Assembly: GCA_038496445.1 (NCBI GenBank)
Contig: JALMLS010000579.1
Span: forward strand, 310,001-374,000
DNA from: Trichosphaerium sp. ATCC 40318
Taxonomy: Eukaryota; Protista; Tubulinea
Reading direction: 5' to 3'
DNA: 64,000 nt
Position 1 is the stretch's first letter. Each line of letters starts with the position of its first letter. The position numbers and the translations under genes are program-made. A model generated the notes under the pieces. It did not search any database. It was not told the origin of the DNA and saw nothing but the letters and a program-made list of their open reading frames with translations. This document shows positions 33,803 through 42,774 of this stretch, one piece after another.

Positions 33803-34568
33803 TTACTCCACTTGCGTGTACATAAGATCACTTCTAATGACGTACTTTCTACTATCTGTAGAGGTTATGGGAGAACCCTCATGAAGTGGGGAAAGCTTTC
33901 CAGTGTGGTGAAAGAACAAGCAAGTGCCCTGTTGTGGTTTGAATGGAAAAGCATCCAATTTTTTCGTTTCTTCATTCCTAAAGCATGTCAGTCATTGTCG
34001 TATACGCCTCCTTACCATTTGTAAAACGTTGTAGTACCGCCTTCGAAGTCGCCATTCAAATAAATGAGAAACGAAAATCTAGAGCGAACGCTAGCGTCTC
34101 GTTTAAAAGAATTGTCAAAATGCGCTTTAAACCGTTGGCCTTGCTCTACTCACAATTACAATCAATAATAAATATTTCGCAGTACCGTATCGATAGAACC
34201 TACATATCCTATTGAATGCACTGTGGCCTTCGCAAAGAGCAAATTTACCCTGCAAGCATTTAGATGCAGAAAATAATCTAACAAGCGTGTACATCGAATA
34301 TTCTACGCGGTAATAACTCTCCAATACGCTTCCATAATCGTTTAGTGTCTTTTATGCTTATTTGTACGACAAGCCTTTTATTACTCCTGTATCTAAGCTC
34401 AGCATTGTCTATACGTGCTGTTTGGTAGAAAGGGACTGTTGCATCGTCGAATCCTTTATCTTCAGCAAACTTAATGTATTCTTCACATTCTGACTTTGAA
34501 AGTACGTTACGTATGTAATAAGCCTCTGGAATACCGTCAACCTCTTGACGAGTAAGTGTGCTTGCCAT
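33803..34568 (-). CDS. 2-oxoglutarate/Fe(II) dioxygenase (prolyl-4-hydroxylase-like)
   Basis: Four exons: NVLSKSECEEYI, RSNKR, CRFYRY/EQGQRFKAHFD, LIYLNGDFEGGTTTF, LHEG, KYVIRSDLMY (HxD...H...K/R motif). Confidence 0.9.
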
Positions 34569-34667
34569 GACGTTGGTGTTGTTAAAGCTGATGCTTCAAA
34601 TTTACAACGTTAAACATTTGATTCTCTGAAAACATCTCTGAATTTCTGCCAAGTTATTTTTATTTAT

Positions 34668-35737
34668 TTACAAGCGATACACAGTGAAATGAACGTTTGT
34701 CTCCCAGAATGTTTCTGATACAATCTGTTTCACTTGTTGCCACATTAGACCATCTAATCCTGCTGCTATCAGTGGTATAGCCAACTAAACATAAGTTAAA
34801 ACAACAATGTTAAGAAAAAAACCAGTACCTTTGTAACATTATTTTCAACACAATGATCTCTCATTGCTTCCAGAGATGATCGTAATCCTGCATATGTAGG
34901 CTTCTGCCAGTACTTTGCTTTAGTTATTAGGTAGTATATGTATACTCCTTCATGCTCTAGGATAGCAACCTGACCTATCTTTGCTTGTTGTGCTTTGAGC
35001 TCGTCTACTTTTCCATATTTTTTTTTGAAAAGAACTGCAATTCCTTTACCCATTGCCAAGTCTACTGAGACGCAATGTGCCAGAGATGAACCAGGAGAGC
35101 ATGTGAATAAATCTCCTACATGCTTAGTATCAGTAGGGCTTATAAAGATGACAACTAACGCCGTACCGTTTCTCTCTTCGAAATGAAAAGCAAAATTTTC
35201 ACTTGGATTACTGAGGCTTTGACGCTCCCCTACAAGTTATTTGTTAAGGTGCCATAGAAAGAATAATAGCGTATTTAGTATACCTGGAAGTTGTGGCAAG
35301 TTGGCTGCGCCTCTGAACTTGTTTATCGTTGAAACAACTGAAAAGTCGAATGCTTTGAATTCGTCTTGAAGAACTTGCTACGAGTGGGTGTAAGAGTGCG
35401 TTCAGGTGGTACATGCATAAATTTGACAGGTAGAAGAAACGAAGAAATGTTTAAACGTTTAATAGTCTAGTTTATGCGCTAAAACGCTCAATAGTAAAAT
35501 ATTGACTAATATAACGTAAACACGCTTATTTTTATCGTTTAAAGCTAGTTTTCGTGTAACCACCCTTGGTACCTTTGTAATAGATGGAAACAACTCCACC
35601 AACTGTGTAATGCCTTGCTCTTTAAGCGTAGGCTGCCCTCGTCTGCCTTTGCCACGACCGCCTCCGCTGCCACCGCGACCTCTCCCTCGGCGTCCACGAC
35701 CTCTAAAACTACGTTTTCCGCCACCTGACTTACTCAT
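34668..35737 (-). CDS. OARD1: TARG1/OARD1-type macrodomain ADP-ribosyl hydrolase with N-terminal RGG tract and CUE-like segment
   Basis: GDLFTC...[55 protein letters not shown]; catalytic Lys and Asp positions present. Confidence 0.9.
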
Positions 35738-36353
35738 TACGCACTTGTCTAGTTTGTGTAAACTGTCAATTCTGTGAAATACGACCAAACTTTCTGCGTT
35801 TTTAACGAGAACTGGTAAAGTGAATGAGATCTGATGTCTGAAGGTTACATTTACCTGTAGTTTTCTGCTTGATTGTTTTGCTGACAGTCTTTTAACAACT
35901 TCCTTTTATCCGATAAGAACAATACTAATCGCAACAGTAATGCAATTGTTCTAATACTTGTTAAAGTATTGGTCACTACAGAAAGGCTGGAAGTGTTTTA
36001 TTGTGTTTAACCGTAATGTCGTACCATGCTATGCCTGTGGAGGGATACTGCAACTCTGTAGTTTATACCTAGAGAAGATGGGTGTTCGAAAACCTGTTAC
36101 CTCGCGATTTTTGATTACAAAGTATTTCGTTATAAAAAGTAACTATGGTGAGCACATATCTTGAACAGTTGAAGGACGTATGTAAAGAAAGTGTATCTAA
36201 CAGCAGGTGTAATAAACCTTAACTGTATGAGGCCTTACTAGTACCAACAAGTCACGTGCAGAACAGAATGCCTGAACCATGTGAAGAAAGTGGGGTGATG
36301 AAGAATAGGAGGATGGATTACGTGTGTTGGTAACACTGTTTATTGTATTTTTG

Positions 36354-39300
36354 TTAAACACCTGTGCCCCGAGTGTGTCTGCTTCTTGATTTTTTCCTTC
36401 TTTTTTGTTTTCTTTCCTTTTGTATGTTTGCTATACAGTACTCAAATATATCTTCAGTAGTTCTTTTACAATCTTTAAGTCCTCTGAATACTTCTCCAAC
36501 ACGAACATCGTTACTATCACAAAATTGCAAAAAGTTTGTTATTTGCTTTAAGGAAGAAAAAAGTAAGAACACACGTGTTGATTTTTTTCGTTGATTTAGT
36601 ACCGTGCATAATCCATCTTTATCTTTGAAAGTGCAATATATTAAATTCATTCTTGCATGTGAAGCGGCTATAATTTGCTCAATAGCTTTCAACTGCTTAT
36701 TACCACCATACCCGCCACAACCCTTTTCTGAGGATAAGAAAGTTCAAATTCTTTTTCTTATGTTTCTTCTCCTCGTACCCAGTTTCCAGTTGCAGTATCT
36801 ATATCTTTGAGTACAGTACTCCCGAGGATCTCTGTATTATTTCCGAACGCTGTATAAGCTGATATTAAGGGGTTAGAAGAAAAGTTGTTTGTTCAACATG
36901 TCTTACCCTTATTTATGTCGCGTTTAATTCTATCCACTCTGAACTCTTCAGAATTATTTCCTTTCTTATACCTTATCGCATCTAAAAGAAGAATGTGGCA
37001 ATCCAAGCAATTCATCTTATCATTGTATAGTGTATCATCAAGAAATTGACCTTCCAATATTCAGTAATTACCAAAAGAGTACAATCTTGCCTTTGAAAGT
37101 GAAGCTCTGTCCAAAACCATCATAGTGACTGAACCGCTCTGCACCGCTAATTACAATGGCCTAATAGCTATAAGTCAGAAGTGATGTGAGCGAATACAAA
37201 GGTAATACCTCATTTGGGTTTAAAGACTCACAAAGGAGGATGACCTACAAAAAAAATCACTAAGAACGGCTGAACAAATTGTGATCATCGTACAATGTAA
37301 CATTCTGGTTTAATGGCATAGGTGATTTCTTGTTGTGCGCATATCCCTGTAGGATCTAAAGAACACCCGCCAATTTCGCTATTACAAAACATTGATTGAA
37401 ACAAAGCTCTCGAATCTTCAATCTTTACATCATCTACTGCCTCAACTAAAATAGCTATAAGCGGCGTTTTGTACACAGGTGATTAAGTGAGGTACCGTGG
37501 CTTATTAGAAAACTAGAATCTGCCCATCGTATTTTAGTTTGAGTCACTTTTCTTTGGATTTTGATTTCACCTGCCAGTGAAACATTGTTGGCTTTCTTCA
37601 GTGCTCTATTTATTGTTAAATGTTTCCAATATCATACAGAACTTACAGCTCACGAAAATACTCAATTATGCAAAATAGTACTTGCTAATAGAGTGTTAAT
37701 GATACGAGGATGTACTAGTAATCTATGTACCTCCTTTGCAGAGCCTGGTTTTGCTGTGTACAACATTGAAAACGACCTCAGAAAAATTTAGTTTTGTGCT
37801 TTACTGTGCTTACTTTTTTACCATTGCTTTTTCCCTGGCTTACTTCTTACTGTACATAAAAAACAATGTGATAAAAGACAAGCTACCTAGAGAGATATTA
37901 GTATAGCAAGAAAAAGAAAGGAGGCAACAGAACACAAAATAAAAAGAAGGTAAAAAATCAAACCTGATCTCGGGTGTAAGAATAATCTGCGTTAACACCT
38001 TTACATAGCCTAGGTAGCTTTGATTCCTTGAATAAATTAGGAAGATCCAACGCTGATGAAAGTATAAAAGGCATAACAGTAGTGTAAAAATCTTTAAAGT
38101 GTTCACTCTTTGCCTTTTGCTGATTTCTAAAAAAGTTTGATTAGTCAACACTTTGTTATTTTTAGAATATCACGTGCGCAAAAAACTGAGGTTTGATTTC
38201 AGGATTGATTTTCTTGAACAGGTTTTGTAGGTCCTTGAGGTCTCTCACTCCTTTTCTAAGCCATCCTGATATCTTTGTCCAATATTCTTGGTTACAATGT
38301 GGTAGATAACAATAGTCTCTACTATCAATCTTTGGTTCTTTTTTCTTTTCAGGATTTCTACGCCTTTGTTTCATTACATGTAATCCCCATTTAACCTCAC
38401 GACTCCAAGAGACAACACCATATTCTATACGTTGGCTGATAATTTTCATGCTCTCTTCAACTAAACAAAAAAAACTGTTTTGAGTTTCTGCAAGGTCCAG
38501 CTGTCAAGTAACTTACTTGTATTAGAAAGCATAAAGCTTTGATCTCCTGAAAGAAACAAACGTAATTCCTTCGTTCTGTTGAGCGGTTCCTCCTTCAAAC
38601 AAAGTTGTTAAACAACGTTCTAAAACCTTTTTTTTGATAAATTAAGAGACAAAAACTAGAGTAGAACATACGGGGTGGTCTATTAGAGCTACTGCAAAGT
38701 TTGAAATCATACTAGCTTGATTTCTTAGCACACCATAGGCATCTAACTCGTGGTGTTAACAGAAACATTTAAGCAAAACGCTTTTCGTCGGACCTTGACA
38801 AAGAGATATAAATTGCTTCCATCTGTCGCTACTCAGCCTTTGTTTCATTTCTACATTCCAAACTTAGTTTTTTCGTGGTTTTTGTTAATAAATACCTGGA
38901 TGTATCGCAAGACATGGCGCATCAATAAATACAATTGATTTATTGAACGTATAGCCAAAATCAATATGGAACAAAGTGTAGTAGTCATCAGCTCCCTAGT
39001 AGCTCCAACCGTTAGTTTGCTTTAAATCCATACTGTAGTTATGTACGTGTATTAGTATATTGTCTTGGTGTCTATCTCTTATACCTAATAAGTATACTGC
39101 AATATAAGATCCCGCTGCGGAAGCTAAGAAATGAGTCATTTCCTTTTCATTCATTGAATCTAATTTATCCCAATTAAAATCGCTCAGAGGTTCACAGTTT
39201 TCTATAAACTCTACTATTCCAGTCGACTTACTATTATGAGAGTAAATAATATCAAAGCTGAAATATTTTAACGCACGTGTAAGGTAAAACCTTGTATAAC

Positions 39301-40515
39301 TTAATGAAAGGTTTTATTTTAAGTGATGAAGTTGCCCATAGTCGATTAAACACATGCATTAATGTAATAATAGCCAAATCGTTACGTAAGTCATCCCCTA
39401 CGTTTACGTCATATGAGAAAGTTGACTTAAATATAAACGTACCTATTTTGAAGATACCTAAAGACTTTTCTTCATGTGTCGATGAGCTAAAAATTATTGT
39501 TATTGTTTTCTCAGTTTTTTCTTCGAGCTGTACCTGAACTCTATTAGCTTTGGTTTACTTCCGCTTGTGAAAATCTTTTTAATAAGCATTCTGTCAGCAG
39601 TATGACCTACGTAGAGTAGTGAGCAAAGTCAAATAATTAAGATCTTGCAAGAACCTGCTAATGTCATTATTGGATTGTCTAGTTGGATAACCTTTCCTGC
39701 TTTGCCTTTTTTTAATGAGGATTCAACAGTTTTTTCTGCGTTTATGAGCGTATCGGATGTAACCCAACTTATAGATTCATTAAAGAACGCAAACCGTGAC
39801 TTAGCAAGCCTAAGAAAAAAATGAGAGTGAACCCTTATTGAAACAATAATACCAAAACGCTAAACTTCCAAGTGTTTTACTTGCGCTTATGCGATCCAAA
39901 AGTGCAAAGGTATCGTCACGTGGATAAATGTCACCAGATCTCTCCATCATGCGAGCAATAAGCGGTAAGAACCAGTACATTTGATTGTCTGTCATCAGCT
40001 ACATAAACAAATAACATTAATCTTTGCAAAAACAAGTCTTAAAGAACTCATTTAGGAATGTAACAAAATTATCCTTTCTAGCTGTGATAGCAACGCTTGG
40101 TAAATACCTTAAAGTCGCAAGGGCGAAAGGTGCATCCGTACTGATTTAAAGTGTGCCAAATGTCAATATCTTTTAACGGTTCGTGGCACGTGTTTTCAGG
40201 ACCTCTTGGGAACCCTGCTACGATTACGCCAGATGCAAGCCTTTTTAGAGCCTTTTGACGTTATGAATACGTTCGATAAGTGTTGTTTACTTACTTGTGA
40301 AGCCTCTAGGCGCAGTTCCTTGTTTTTTGAGTTTAACAAGTATAAAAGCGTTTGTATGGCTCTTGGAGCTTCTATATCACGTGTTTGATTTGTTCGTTCG
40401 CGTTCCTCTGTATCTGACACTTGTAGGGTTTCAAACTGGCTTGAAGAATCATCATCTATACGGACAGTTATTCTATTAAGCTACTAGGGAGGGTTAGCTC
40501 ACCAGACTTTTCCAT
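36354..40515 (-). CDS. PI3K-family kinase (helical + catalytic domain) fused to C-terminal PARG domain
   Basis: Kinase: FKI/GDDLRND, GIVEFI, LLGIRDRHQDNILI, LFHIDFGY. PARG: ALDLPNLF, Q/VACLLSHCFLCT, FCIIEYF, IED...FCNSEIGGC...AQQEITYAIKPEC, GAERFSHYDGFG, LLDAIRY, RDINK/AYTAF, ATGNW/GCGGYGG...LKAIEQIIAA. Confidence 0.85.
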
Positions 40516-40730
40516 ACGGCTCTGAATAGCTTAAATCCTTAAGTTTTTGGAATTGTTTTTTTTAAGGCCTTGTGGTTTAACTGAAGGAAAAAAGGGCAAT
40601 CTCATTTTTAGAGCTTAGAGGGAGAAGACTAAATTGATATCAAACAGGTTTTGACGCGTGATGTCACGATAATCGTCATGTACTTAGATACAATAAAACA
40701 CTTAACTACAACTCGTAACTCGCACTAGGG

Positions 40731-40897
40731 TTTCAGGGTGTGGTACTGTACACTTTTTAGACTGTAGTATCGTACACTTTTTAGGTTGTAGTACCGTACT
40801 CTTTTTAGGTTGTAGTACCGTACTCTTTTTAGGGTGTGGTACTGTACTCTTTTCAGGGTGTGGTACTGTACTCTTTTTAGGGTGTAGTACCGTACTC
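40731..40897. repeat. 24-bp minisatellite, 7 copies
   Basis: Consensus TTTTTAGGGTGT(A/G)GTAC(C/T)GTACTC, head to tail with no spacers. Confidence 0.9.
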
Positions 40898-42774
40898 TTT
40901 TTTTTACCAGTTATAACGTGCTTGACCATTACTTTACAAGCGGCCACTTGATGTAACTTGAATCTAGAGCGTAGAAATAATTTTCAGGTATGACATTTAG
41001 TTAGATAGGGGTAAGTTGAGGACAGTTTATTGTAATGATTTATTTAGGGTTTAGTGCTAGTTTTTGTTTACTTTTTAGGTGGTTGTATAGGACCAAAAAT
41101 GACAGACTTTTTGTACTTCAGTTTTAGTTCTGCATCATCACGTGATAGTGTACCTATAATATAAGAAAAGGTGCAACGTGTGTAAGTAAGTAAAGATGTT
41201 TATTCGGTTCAAAGTCAACATCGGTTCAAGACCAAATGTGACTATTACATACCACCTTTTTACAGCGTTCTTGTTTAGTCGTCTAGGTAGGGGGGAGTAC
41301 GTAACTCTTTTTTGTTCGTGTGAATACAAGATTCTTTTATTCAATCTACACGCGAAGCCCATGCGAGCGCCAGTGCCCTTGAGTCGTCTAGGTAAACCTT
41401 GAGCAGGTATCAAGGTTTGCCGAAAGTAGACATACCTGTTTGGTAGTTTGTATTGATCAATCTTTTGGTTTCACATTTTTTAACTAGGTAGGTGGGAGTA
41501 CATAACCATTTATTGAGGGTGTGGAATATTGCCAAATCCCGTCAACAAAAATCGCGTGTACTATTTATCACCTCCACCTATTAAGCTCTTGCGTTCCCAT
41601 GAGATGTGCTAGTTTCTTGTATGATTTTTGGTGCGATAAAAACACAATTTAGTACGTTTTGACCGTATTATTTTAAAAATAACCCATCACATCTACTTTT
41701 TGAGCTCAAACAATGCTGGAGGCTTTGGAAATGCTACATAGAGGCTACTCTATTAATGTGATAGCGGGCTGGGCACGTGGGTACGAGAGCGAACTTTTTT
41801 TTTTGTCTATGAACGTCGGAGTCATTTTTTAAGTTGTTTTTACGCAATCACAGGAGTAAATAAACCCAACACATAACGCGTCAAGTGTCAGCGAAATTTT
41901 GTATCTGTAAAAACGACAAACATGTTTGCAAACACAATAAATACATTGTATCTACTGTTCCCGAGCACTTTCAGTCCGATTCGTGGCCTTCCGAAACCCT
42001 AACCCTAGTAAAATTCAGATAAATACAGGGATTAGGCCTTAAATGGATTTGGCAATTAAGCCATTGCCTAAACTCGCACCTTTTCTTGACAGTTGTTTCG
42101 TATTCAGACGTAGCTTTCAATATAGTTTACGTACAATTAGATAATCAGGTAGCTTAACACCTTCTCGTCATAGTCTTCTTTCTTTACCCAACATAAAGCT
42201 AACCAGATTATAGCTTACTTCTGACAAAGCAAAGGATAGAAGCCTGATGGTGCTCGCCTTTGACTGAACCCTCATTAAGGTAAGGAGTCTAGAATCTTGA
42301 AAGGAAAGGAAGTTAGGGATATTTACCCAGGAGAACCCCGTTGACTGCTATAAGTCGCACTGTGAACAGAGTTAGTTCTCCTGTGTTTTATATTTGTTAT
42401 GTTACGCCAACAGAGAAATTTGATGGGAAGAGTGGGATAGAGATGGTTACGGGTGTGAATTTATTGGTGCGTCTAGCGAGGGCTTCCCATTTGACATATT
42501 TCATGGAGACATGTAGTCCATTGGAGTGGTTGTTCCATAGAATCTTGCTTACCGACTATGTTTGACTTTAAAAATCATCTACAAAATCTCACTATATAAC
42601 TTTCAATTGCTGTCGCATACACAAGTACACTCTTTTCAAGGGGCAACACTTCGCAGCTTTGGATACTACAGAAAGTGCGAAAATAGTCAGGCTTTTTGGG
42701 CACTATTTACCAATCTTGTGATTGTTTTTACGCACTCTAACTTATCTCTTACGCACTAATTTAGAAGTACCATT

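Follow-up and report, generated by a model that had tools for sequence, protein, structure and literature searches.

A PARG domain with a rewritten catalytic loop, probably a binder rather than a degrader of poly(ADP-ribose), predicted in one reading frame with a PI3K-type kinase in the amoeba Trichosphaerium

The window examined here, a 64-kb stretch of Trichosphaerium DNA, is AT-rich (G+C of 37%), and its minus strand around 37327-37401 is broken into short open stretches, the pattern expected for a eukaryotic gene with many introns. We modelled this gene as a series of exons (Table 1) whose reading frame, in a frame check, continues uninterrupted from 40477 to the stop codon and takes in both a kinase and a PARG region. 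Transcript evidence was taken from contigs of four public runs aligned to 36300-40600; run X1 comes from organism A, and runs X2 and X5 come from organism B in two other studies. The contigs show many clean skips of 40-109 bases with minus-strand ends GT..AG, or GC..AG in two cases, and therefore represent spliced transcripts. Joints within such spliced contigs back 18 of the 23 introns, and the other five (38593-38671, 38743-38793, 38851-38895, 38996-39046 and 39810-39852) were positioned manually so as to give GT..AG ends and keep the frame. The 5' end of the model is provisional, as an in-frame ATG is absent between 40294 and 40477 and a candidate upstream ATG at 40515 joins the frame only via a putative 35-base intron. 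When the model was searched against the 64-kb window with tblastn, no second PARG copy was returned. A TARG1/OARD1 homologue lies downstream on the same strand; its match to OARD1 is clear, and a predicted intact terminal ADP-ribose hydrolase therefore adjoins the kinase-PARG gene.

Table 1 Features of the kinase-PARG gene and its neighbour, in window coordinates
Feature	Coordinates	Strand	Basis or remarks
Coding model	36354..40477	minus	24 exons, 969 codons, single open frame; stop codon 36354-36356
PI3K/PI4K-type kinase exons	38672..39486	minus	PF00454, E 2.6e-7, 31.3 bits
IFK-x-GDDLRND	near 39375-39452	minus	read in model
DRHQDN	39059-39076	minus	read in model
HIDFG	38954-38968	minus	read in model
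Junction exon, open frame into start of PARG region	38178..38460	minus	joints 38126/38178 and 38460/38517 in X3
PARG helical accessory domain (PARG_cat_N, PF20811) exons	37731..38126	minus	positions 4-47 (E 5.8e-4) and 51-67 (E 0.043)
Signature-loop exon	37292..37445	minus	model residues 688-737; joints 37242/37292 and 37445/37496 in X1, X2 and X5
Ile695-Glu696, equivalent of human Ile726-Glu727	37417..37422	minus	aligned with IED of Tetrahymena PARG
Rewritten catalytic loop, F-Q-S-M-F-C-N ... G-G-C-x9-Q-Q-E	37327..37401	minus	alignment with Tetrahymena PARG 4EPP and codon map
Human D737 position, Asp to Met705	37390-37392	minus	4EPP alignment (QVDFAN Asp)
Third signature Gly to Cys714	37363-37365	minus	4EPP alignment
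Human E755 position, first Glu to Gln725	37330-37332	minus	4EPP alignment; codon CAA
Human E756 position, Glu726 kept	37327-37329	minus	4EPP alignment
Y-D-G-F, counterpart of Tyr-clasp YTGYA	37113..37124	minus	motif read by eye against YTGYA of PMC3519477
Diphosphate-binding loop G-C-G-G-Y-G-G	36702..36778	minus	split by intron 36722-36777; joint 36721/36778 in X1
TARG1/OARD1 homologue	34799-35236	minus	E 1.5e-33 to human OARD1; about 1.1 kb downstream

The kinase exons exceed the PF00454 cut-off of 27.1 bits, and their best solved relatives in the PDB are class II and class I PI3K. The kinase catalytic motifs (Lys/GDDLRxD, DRHxxN and DFG) are all intact in the model. The sequence-only reading had described the PARG domain as fused to this kinase, and that description stands in part. 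In its favour there is one continuous frame and a very tight spacing of exons, with gaps of 79 and 56 bases between the final exon recognisable as kinase (38672-38742) and the first exons on the PARG side, which share its frame; against it, contig coverage has a gap at 38604-39035, so that no displayed contig bridges the kinase and PARG halves. Because the displayed contigs skip this interval, a single mRNA that spans both halves is rated as no more than likely from the layout of the exons, and retention of intron 38593-38671 would put a stop right after the kinase. The junction exon between the halves has no match in Pfam, and a phmmer search of it against the PDB gave neither a PI3K nor a PARG match. 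Its first 40 residues look like the end of the kinase domain and may be that domain's last helix.

The PARG region is recognised by two profiles that match collinearly over six exons. Four of these follow PARG_cat_C (PF05028) in order at positions 14-64, 77-98, 99-146 and 169-203 with scores of 24.4, 19.3, 24.3 and 35.9 bits, of which one passes the cut-off of 26.3 bits singly and which come to a rough sum of about 104 bits. The signature-loop exon accounts for positions 14-64 (E 2.6e-5) and exon 37092-37157 for positions 77-98 (E 9.4e-4). The matches to PARG_cat_N are likewise collinear and reach a rough sum of about 35 bits, with each exon alone falling below the cut-off of 25.6 bits. By these profile matches, the PARG part is a complete catalytic unit of the canonical type, with helical accessory domain and macro fold, and not a fragment.

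Across the catalytic loop the minus strand translates to FQSMFCNSEIGGCSLDPTGICAQQE, in agreement with the sequence-only reading. A phmmer search against solved structures aligns this loop with the LQVDFAN..GGG-x7-QEE of Tetrahymena PARG (4EPP); the Tetrahymena counterpart is LQVDFANCDIGGGILG-NGL-VQEEI, and the Trichosphaerium gene appears in the same alignment as FQSMFCNSEIGGCSLDPTGICAQQEI. The substitutions that had been reported at human D737 (now Met), the third Gly (now Cys) and E755 (now Gln) are all borne out by this alignment, as are the two features said to be kept, the equivalent of E756 (Glu726) and the phosphate loop, whose CGGYGG is matched by mouse PARG. Met705 thus sits where the human enzyme has the buried Asp737, and the loop reads GGC-X9-QQE against the signature GGG-X6-8-QEE, departing from it in the third Gly, the spacer and the first Glu. 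The spacer, which the earlier reading had passed over, is 9 residues long, compared with 7 in Tetrahymena PARG and 6-8 in the signature. Relative to the canonical form, the loop has two additional residues, one of which is a Pro, and three Cys that are new. An alternative register, in which QEI is the counterpart of QEE and the spacer has 10 residues, was rejected because the phmmer alignment and a conserved E-I pair both favour the QQE/QEE pairing. All three changed codons are identical to the window in contigs of X1, X2 and X5, and the sole contig difference in the signature-loop exon is a synonymous change in a Ser codon (37393 T>G). The second Gln codon, at which GAA had been set beforehand as the counter-evidence to look for, is CAA in the contigs of these three studies, and GAA was not seen.

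Many of the residues that hold ADP-ribose in other PARGs are kept around this loop. The pair equivalent to Ile695-Glu696 contacts adenine N1 and N6 in the human enzyme (PMC3519477). In the loop itself the first two signature Gly are kept, along with Gln724 (human Q754, a backbone contact to phosphate), and in the 4EPP alignment Asn708 corresponds to human N740, the 3''-OH contact. The positions of the acid/base Glu (human E756) and of this Asn, whose roles are described for the human enzyme (PMC3519477), are occupied by Glu726 and Asn708. Toward the C-terminus, Asn846 is kept as the equivalent of human N869, and an A-T-G-N-W at 36779-36793 precedes the diphosphate-binding loop, whose CGGYGG aligns with the CGAFGGD of mouse and human PARG (E about 1e-3). 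The stacking Phe (human F902) is also kept, in a YCTF that aligns with the YFTF of mouse PARG, and the position of human Phe875 is occupied by Tyr. In the Tyr clasp, which reads YDGFG, Tyr792 appears to be kept and Tyr795 to be replaced by Phe, a placement made from the exon-level profile match at positions 77-98; phmmer searches of the short exons 37092-37157 and 36908-37048 against the PDB gave chance matches only.

Published mutagenesis describes what substitutions at the equivalent positions do. The acid/base of human PARG is Glu756, which contacts the 1''-OH; Glu755 accepts a bond from the 2''-OH and is held in position by the buried Asp737, a possible relay for protons. The substitutions D737N and E755N (D738N and E756N in the bovine enzyme) leave no activity but do not significantly weaken inhibitor binding (PMC3519477). 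A review regards both glutamates as critical and has the first one pre-activate the attacking water (PMC4030884). In the mouse enzyme, E748Q, which is the same Glu-to-Gln change as in the amoeba gene, has residual activity and an unchanged loop conformation, and E748N is dead (PMC3897571). Replacement of the third Gly by Leu in AtPARG1 (G264L) kills activity, and AtPARG2, with a natural GGL-X7-QEE, has no detectable activity even when the Gly is restored (PMC4287526). In cells, catalytically dead PARG traps PAR-containing complexes (PMC3439892). Multiplied PARG genes and paralogues with variant signatures of unknown activity are known from protists, and the few extra domains found on PARGs are PBZ, Nab2 zinc finger, G8, transmembrane and L32e, with no kinase among them (PMC4245714). 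A text search of the literature for PARG paired with PI3_PI4_kinase in amoebae turned up no account of such a pairing.

Relatives of the gene were sought with exon-level queries, and no orthologue was found in any collection searched. A phmmer search of the signature-loop exon against a library of 1.84 billion representative proteins gave five matches, all of them spurious bacterial repeat or surface proteins (SLH, Big_2, DUF11), and neither the gene's own product nor a close relative was present in that library. The last exon returned nothing in a word search and no usable match in a feature search of the ESM Atlas. Two metagenome scans, one with the signature-loop exon and one with the junction exon, and a viral scan with the last exon returned pattern matches, none of which was upheld by tblastn.

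Because three catalytic residues are lost and the residues that bind ADP-ribose are kept, the PARG domain probably binds poly(ADP-ribose) and does not degrade it. The lost set comprises the first Glu, which would orient the 2''-OH and pre-activate the water, its supporting Asp and the third Gly; as each of these three changes is independently damaging and the loop is longer besides, efficient PAR hydrolysis is unlikely. The groups that would still hold ADP-ribose are the Ile-Glu pair, the stacking Phe, the phosphate loop, the Asn at the 3''-OH, the backbone contact of the Gln and, it appears, most of the Tyr clasp, and with the pocket preserved in this way ADP-ribose binding is likely; we infer its retention solely from these kept contact residues. 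The most probable outcome is a domain that still docks on ADP-ribose or on PAR chain ends, with PAR hydrolysis that is very poor or nil. Such a domain would serve as a reader or substrate trap, through which the attached kinase is brought to ADP-ribosylated targets or coupled to them. We give a probability of about one half to this reading, in which the domain serves for binding, has no useful turnover of PAR, and couples the kinase to ADP-ribosylated targets. The earlier proposal of a pseudo-enzyme or reader is plausible: the part that expected lost or strongly impaired PAR hydrolysis is backed by the published mutagenesis, whereas the residual activity of E748Q and the kept acid/base Glu weaken a plain dead-enzyme verdict. 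Purely as conjecture, the PARG domain might target or regulate the fused kinase.

Several observations weigh against a domain that binds without turnover. Mouse E748Q keeps a wild-type loop shape as well as residual activity (PMC3897571), and with the acid/base Glu in place, the nearby Glu710 and Asp717 could compensate for what is missing. The two extra loop residues, one of them a Pro, and the three new Cys could instead disturb binding, and the link to the kinase is unbridged by displayed contigs over 38604-39035 and involves introns that are inferred. As an alternative, the domain may still be a hydrolase that is slow on PAR or has shifted to another linkage or substrate, such as mono-ADP-ribose or nucleic-acid ADP-ribose, with Glu726 as the acid and Gln725 still hydrogen-bonding the 2''-OH. 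Such an enzyme would fit with the retention of the entire binding pocket together with Glu726, Asn708 and the first two signature Gly, with the behaviour of the mouse Gln mutant, whose loop is unchanged (PMC3897571), with a bias of variation toward synonymous changes, which indicates that the domain is under constraint, and with the variant signatures of other protist PARG paralogues, whose activity is unknown (PMC4245714). We nevertheless consider it somewhat unlikely, as the three changes coincide in one loop, any one of them is enough to abolish activity or lower it strongly in other PARGs, the spacer falls outside the 6-8 range, and AtPARG2 stays inactive even after its Gly is restored. 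It is improbable that ADP-ribose binding has been lost as well and that the PARG fold is a mere structural or protein-interaction scaffold for the kinase. The loop that touches ribose'' and the diphosphate is two residues longer and has gained the Pro and the three Cys, and the summed PARG_cat_C score over four exons marks a divergent member; against a scaffold, nearly all known ADP-ribose contacts outside the three changed sites are kept, which is unexpected if binding were dispensable.

That the rewritten loop belongs to a decaying pseudogene copy, or is a product of sequencing or assembly error, we find scarcely credible. Small indel noise does exist in the contigs, one of which (from X3) shows a T inserted into the A7 run at 39706 that we take for contig noise or a rare variant. 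Against an artefact stand the frame that is open across 24 exons, the identical codons at all three changed sites in spliced contigs from three studies, and the nature of the differences from organism B. Ten exonic differences are listed for the whole gene in this shallow comparison with one very close relative (about 0.5% divergence), and eight of them are synonymous, A655V and K184E being the two that are not; the synonymous excess has a binomial P of 0.0004-0.005 against a neutral expectation of 75% or 65% non-synonymous changes. In the PARG half the split is four synonymous to one non-synonymous. This bias argues against a decaying copy and, together with the open frame and the spliced contigs, largely refutes the pseudogene and sequencing-error readings. 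The gene is real, expressed and selectively maintained in the amoeba.

Building on the reading of the domain as a binder, it is possible that the gene encodes an ADP-ribose-sensing phosphoinositide kinase, in which a hydrolysis-defective PARG pocket reads PAR or ADP-ribose and recruits or activates the PI3K-family kinase, so that ADP-ribosylation would be coupled straight to phosphorylation of lipids or, in PI3K-like fashion, of proteins. The pocket might even be under redox control through Cys714 and Cys722, two new residues that bracket the loop, and the protein might be part of a wider amoebal repertoire of PARG-fold readers. We regard this fuller scheme as tentative and, taken as a whole, unlikely.

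Natural inactive PARG paralogues are already known, and it is their role that remains obscure. What distinguishes this one, as far as it can be read from the gene, is the combination of a kept pocket, the loss of three determinants of the catalytic loop and a single frame with an apparently active PI3K-type kinase. The gene provides a concrete candidate for a PARG fold converted into a reader, one open to testing, and it raises the possibility that ADP-ribosylation is linked directly to phosphoinositide signalling, a connection not described in the papers searched. If the domain is active instead, then the GGG-X6-8-QEE rule is less strict than has been assumed.

The closest precedent for the state of the active site is Arabidopsis PARG2, which is likewise a canonical-type paralogue that has been kept in its genome, is expressed and has the third signature Gly replaced (PMC4287526). 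It differs in being a stand-alone protein in which the Asp, both glutamates and a 7-residue spacer are all preserved; the amoeba gene has changes at the Asp and the first Glu as well, its spacer has 9 residues, and its PARG domain comes after a PI3K-type kinase. Engineered inactive mutants hit the same positions, namely bovine D738N/E756N, human E755A/E756A, mouse E748Q/E748N and the PARG-DEAD E756D PAR trap (PMC3519477, PMC3897571, PMC3439892). Little or no activity remains in these mutants, although the pocket is kept and inhibitor or PAR complexes are still bound. Each is, however, a one-residue change made in the laboratory to an enzyme that is canonical in all other respects, and the PAR-trap mutant alters the second Glu, which the amoeba gene retains. 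Naegleria gruberi offers another multiplied protist family with variant signatures (GGA/H-X7-QEE) and unknown activity (PMC4245714), but its PARGs are bacterial-type, single-domain proteins that keep QEE, unlike the canonical-type amoeba gene with PARG_cat_N, PARG_cat_C and QQE. With regard to the proposed mode of action, the nearest likeness is to non-catalytic macrodomain readers, whose pocket holds ADP-ribose, does not turn it over and recruits the remainder of the protein (PMC4756826, PMC3439892); the known readers are small classical macrodomains, and no natural reader has yet been demonstrated that uses the PARG-type macro fold together with the accessory domain. Set beside these systems, the Trichosphaerium gene appears to encode a naturally degenerate PARG paralogue in which the rewrite is more extensive and a kinase partner has been added.

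The introns of the kinase-PARG gene are very short, ranging from 40 to 109 bases and mostly falling between 41 and 56, and two of them, both supported by spliced contigs, have GC..AG rather than GT..AG ends. Near the 5' end of the gene, the ATG is not in frame with the open frame that follows it. A 35-base GT..AG intron in the interval between them could link the two; against this, a contig from the public run X2 passes through the interval without splicing. Just upstream of the gene, 24-base tandem repeats give rise to a repeated open stretch of the KKSTV(L/P)(H/Q)P type.

One contig from a second public run, X3, carries an extra T within a coding exon, so that the coding strand reads A8 rather than A7 and the frame would shift. 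The A7 version, which is that of the window sequence, leaves the frame open.

The PARG half of the modelled protein contains 20 cysteines in 473 residues, as compared to 6 in the preceding 497. Three of the 20 (Cys707, Cys714, and Cys722) lie in or adjoin the rewritten catalytic loop, where GGC-x9-QQE replaces GGG-X6-8-QEE.

Features in and around the kinase-PARG gene (window positions)
Feature	Position	Strand
24-base tandem repeats	40705-40983	-
ATG	40515-40513	-
Possible 35-base intron (within)	40478-40515	-
Beginning of open frame	40477	-
Extra T	39706	
GC..AG intron	38127-38177	-
GC..AG intron	37050-37089	-
PARG half	36354-38323	-
RGG-like open stretch	35462-35905	-
TARG1/OARD1 homologue	34799-35236	-
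Oxygenase-like open stretches	34015-34595	-

Farther downstream, open stretches resemble, as judged by eye, an oxygenase of the 2OG-Fe(II)/prolyl-hydroxylase type; a Pfam search of 34281-34595 (-) at E<=1 returned no match. Between the PARG stop codon and the TARG1 exon lies an open stretch in which an ATG is followed by a Gly/Arg-rich (RGG-like) run. It could belong to the TARG1 gene as its N-terminal exon, or be a small gene of its own. The TARG1/OARD1 homologue itself is a strong one, encoded on the same strand as the kinase-PARG gene and lying downstream of the PARG stop codon at a distance of approximately 1.1 kb. Whereas Pfam gives no match to it at E<=1, a PDB search is clear, matching human OARD1 with an E value of 1.5e-33 over 98 aligned residues.
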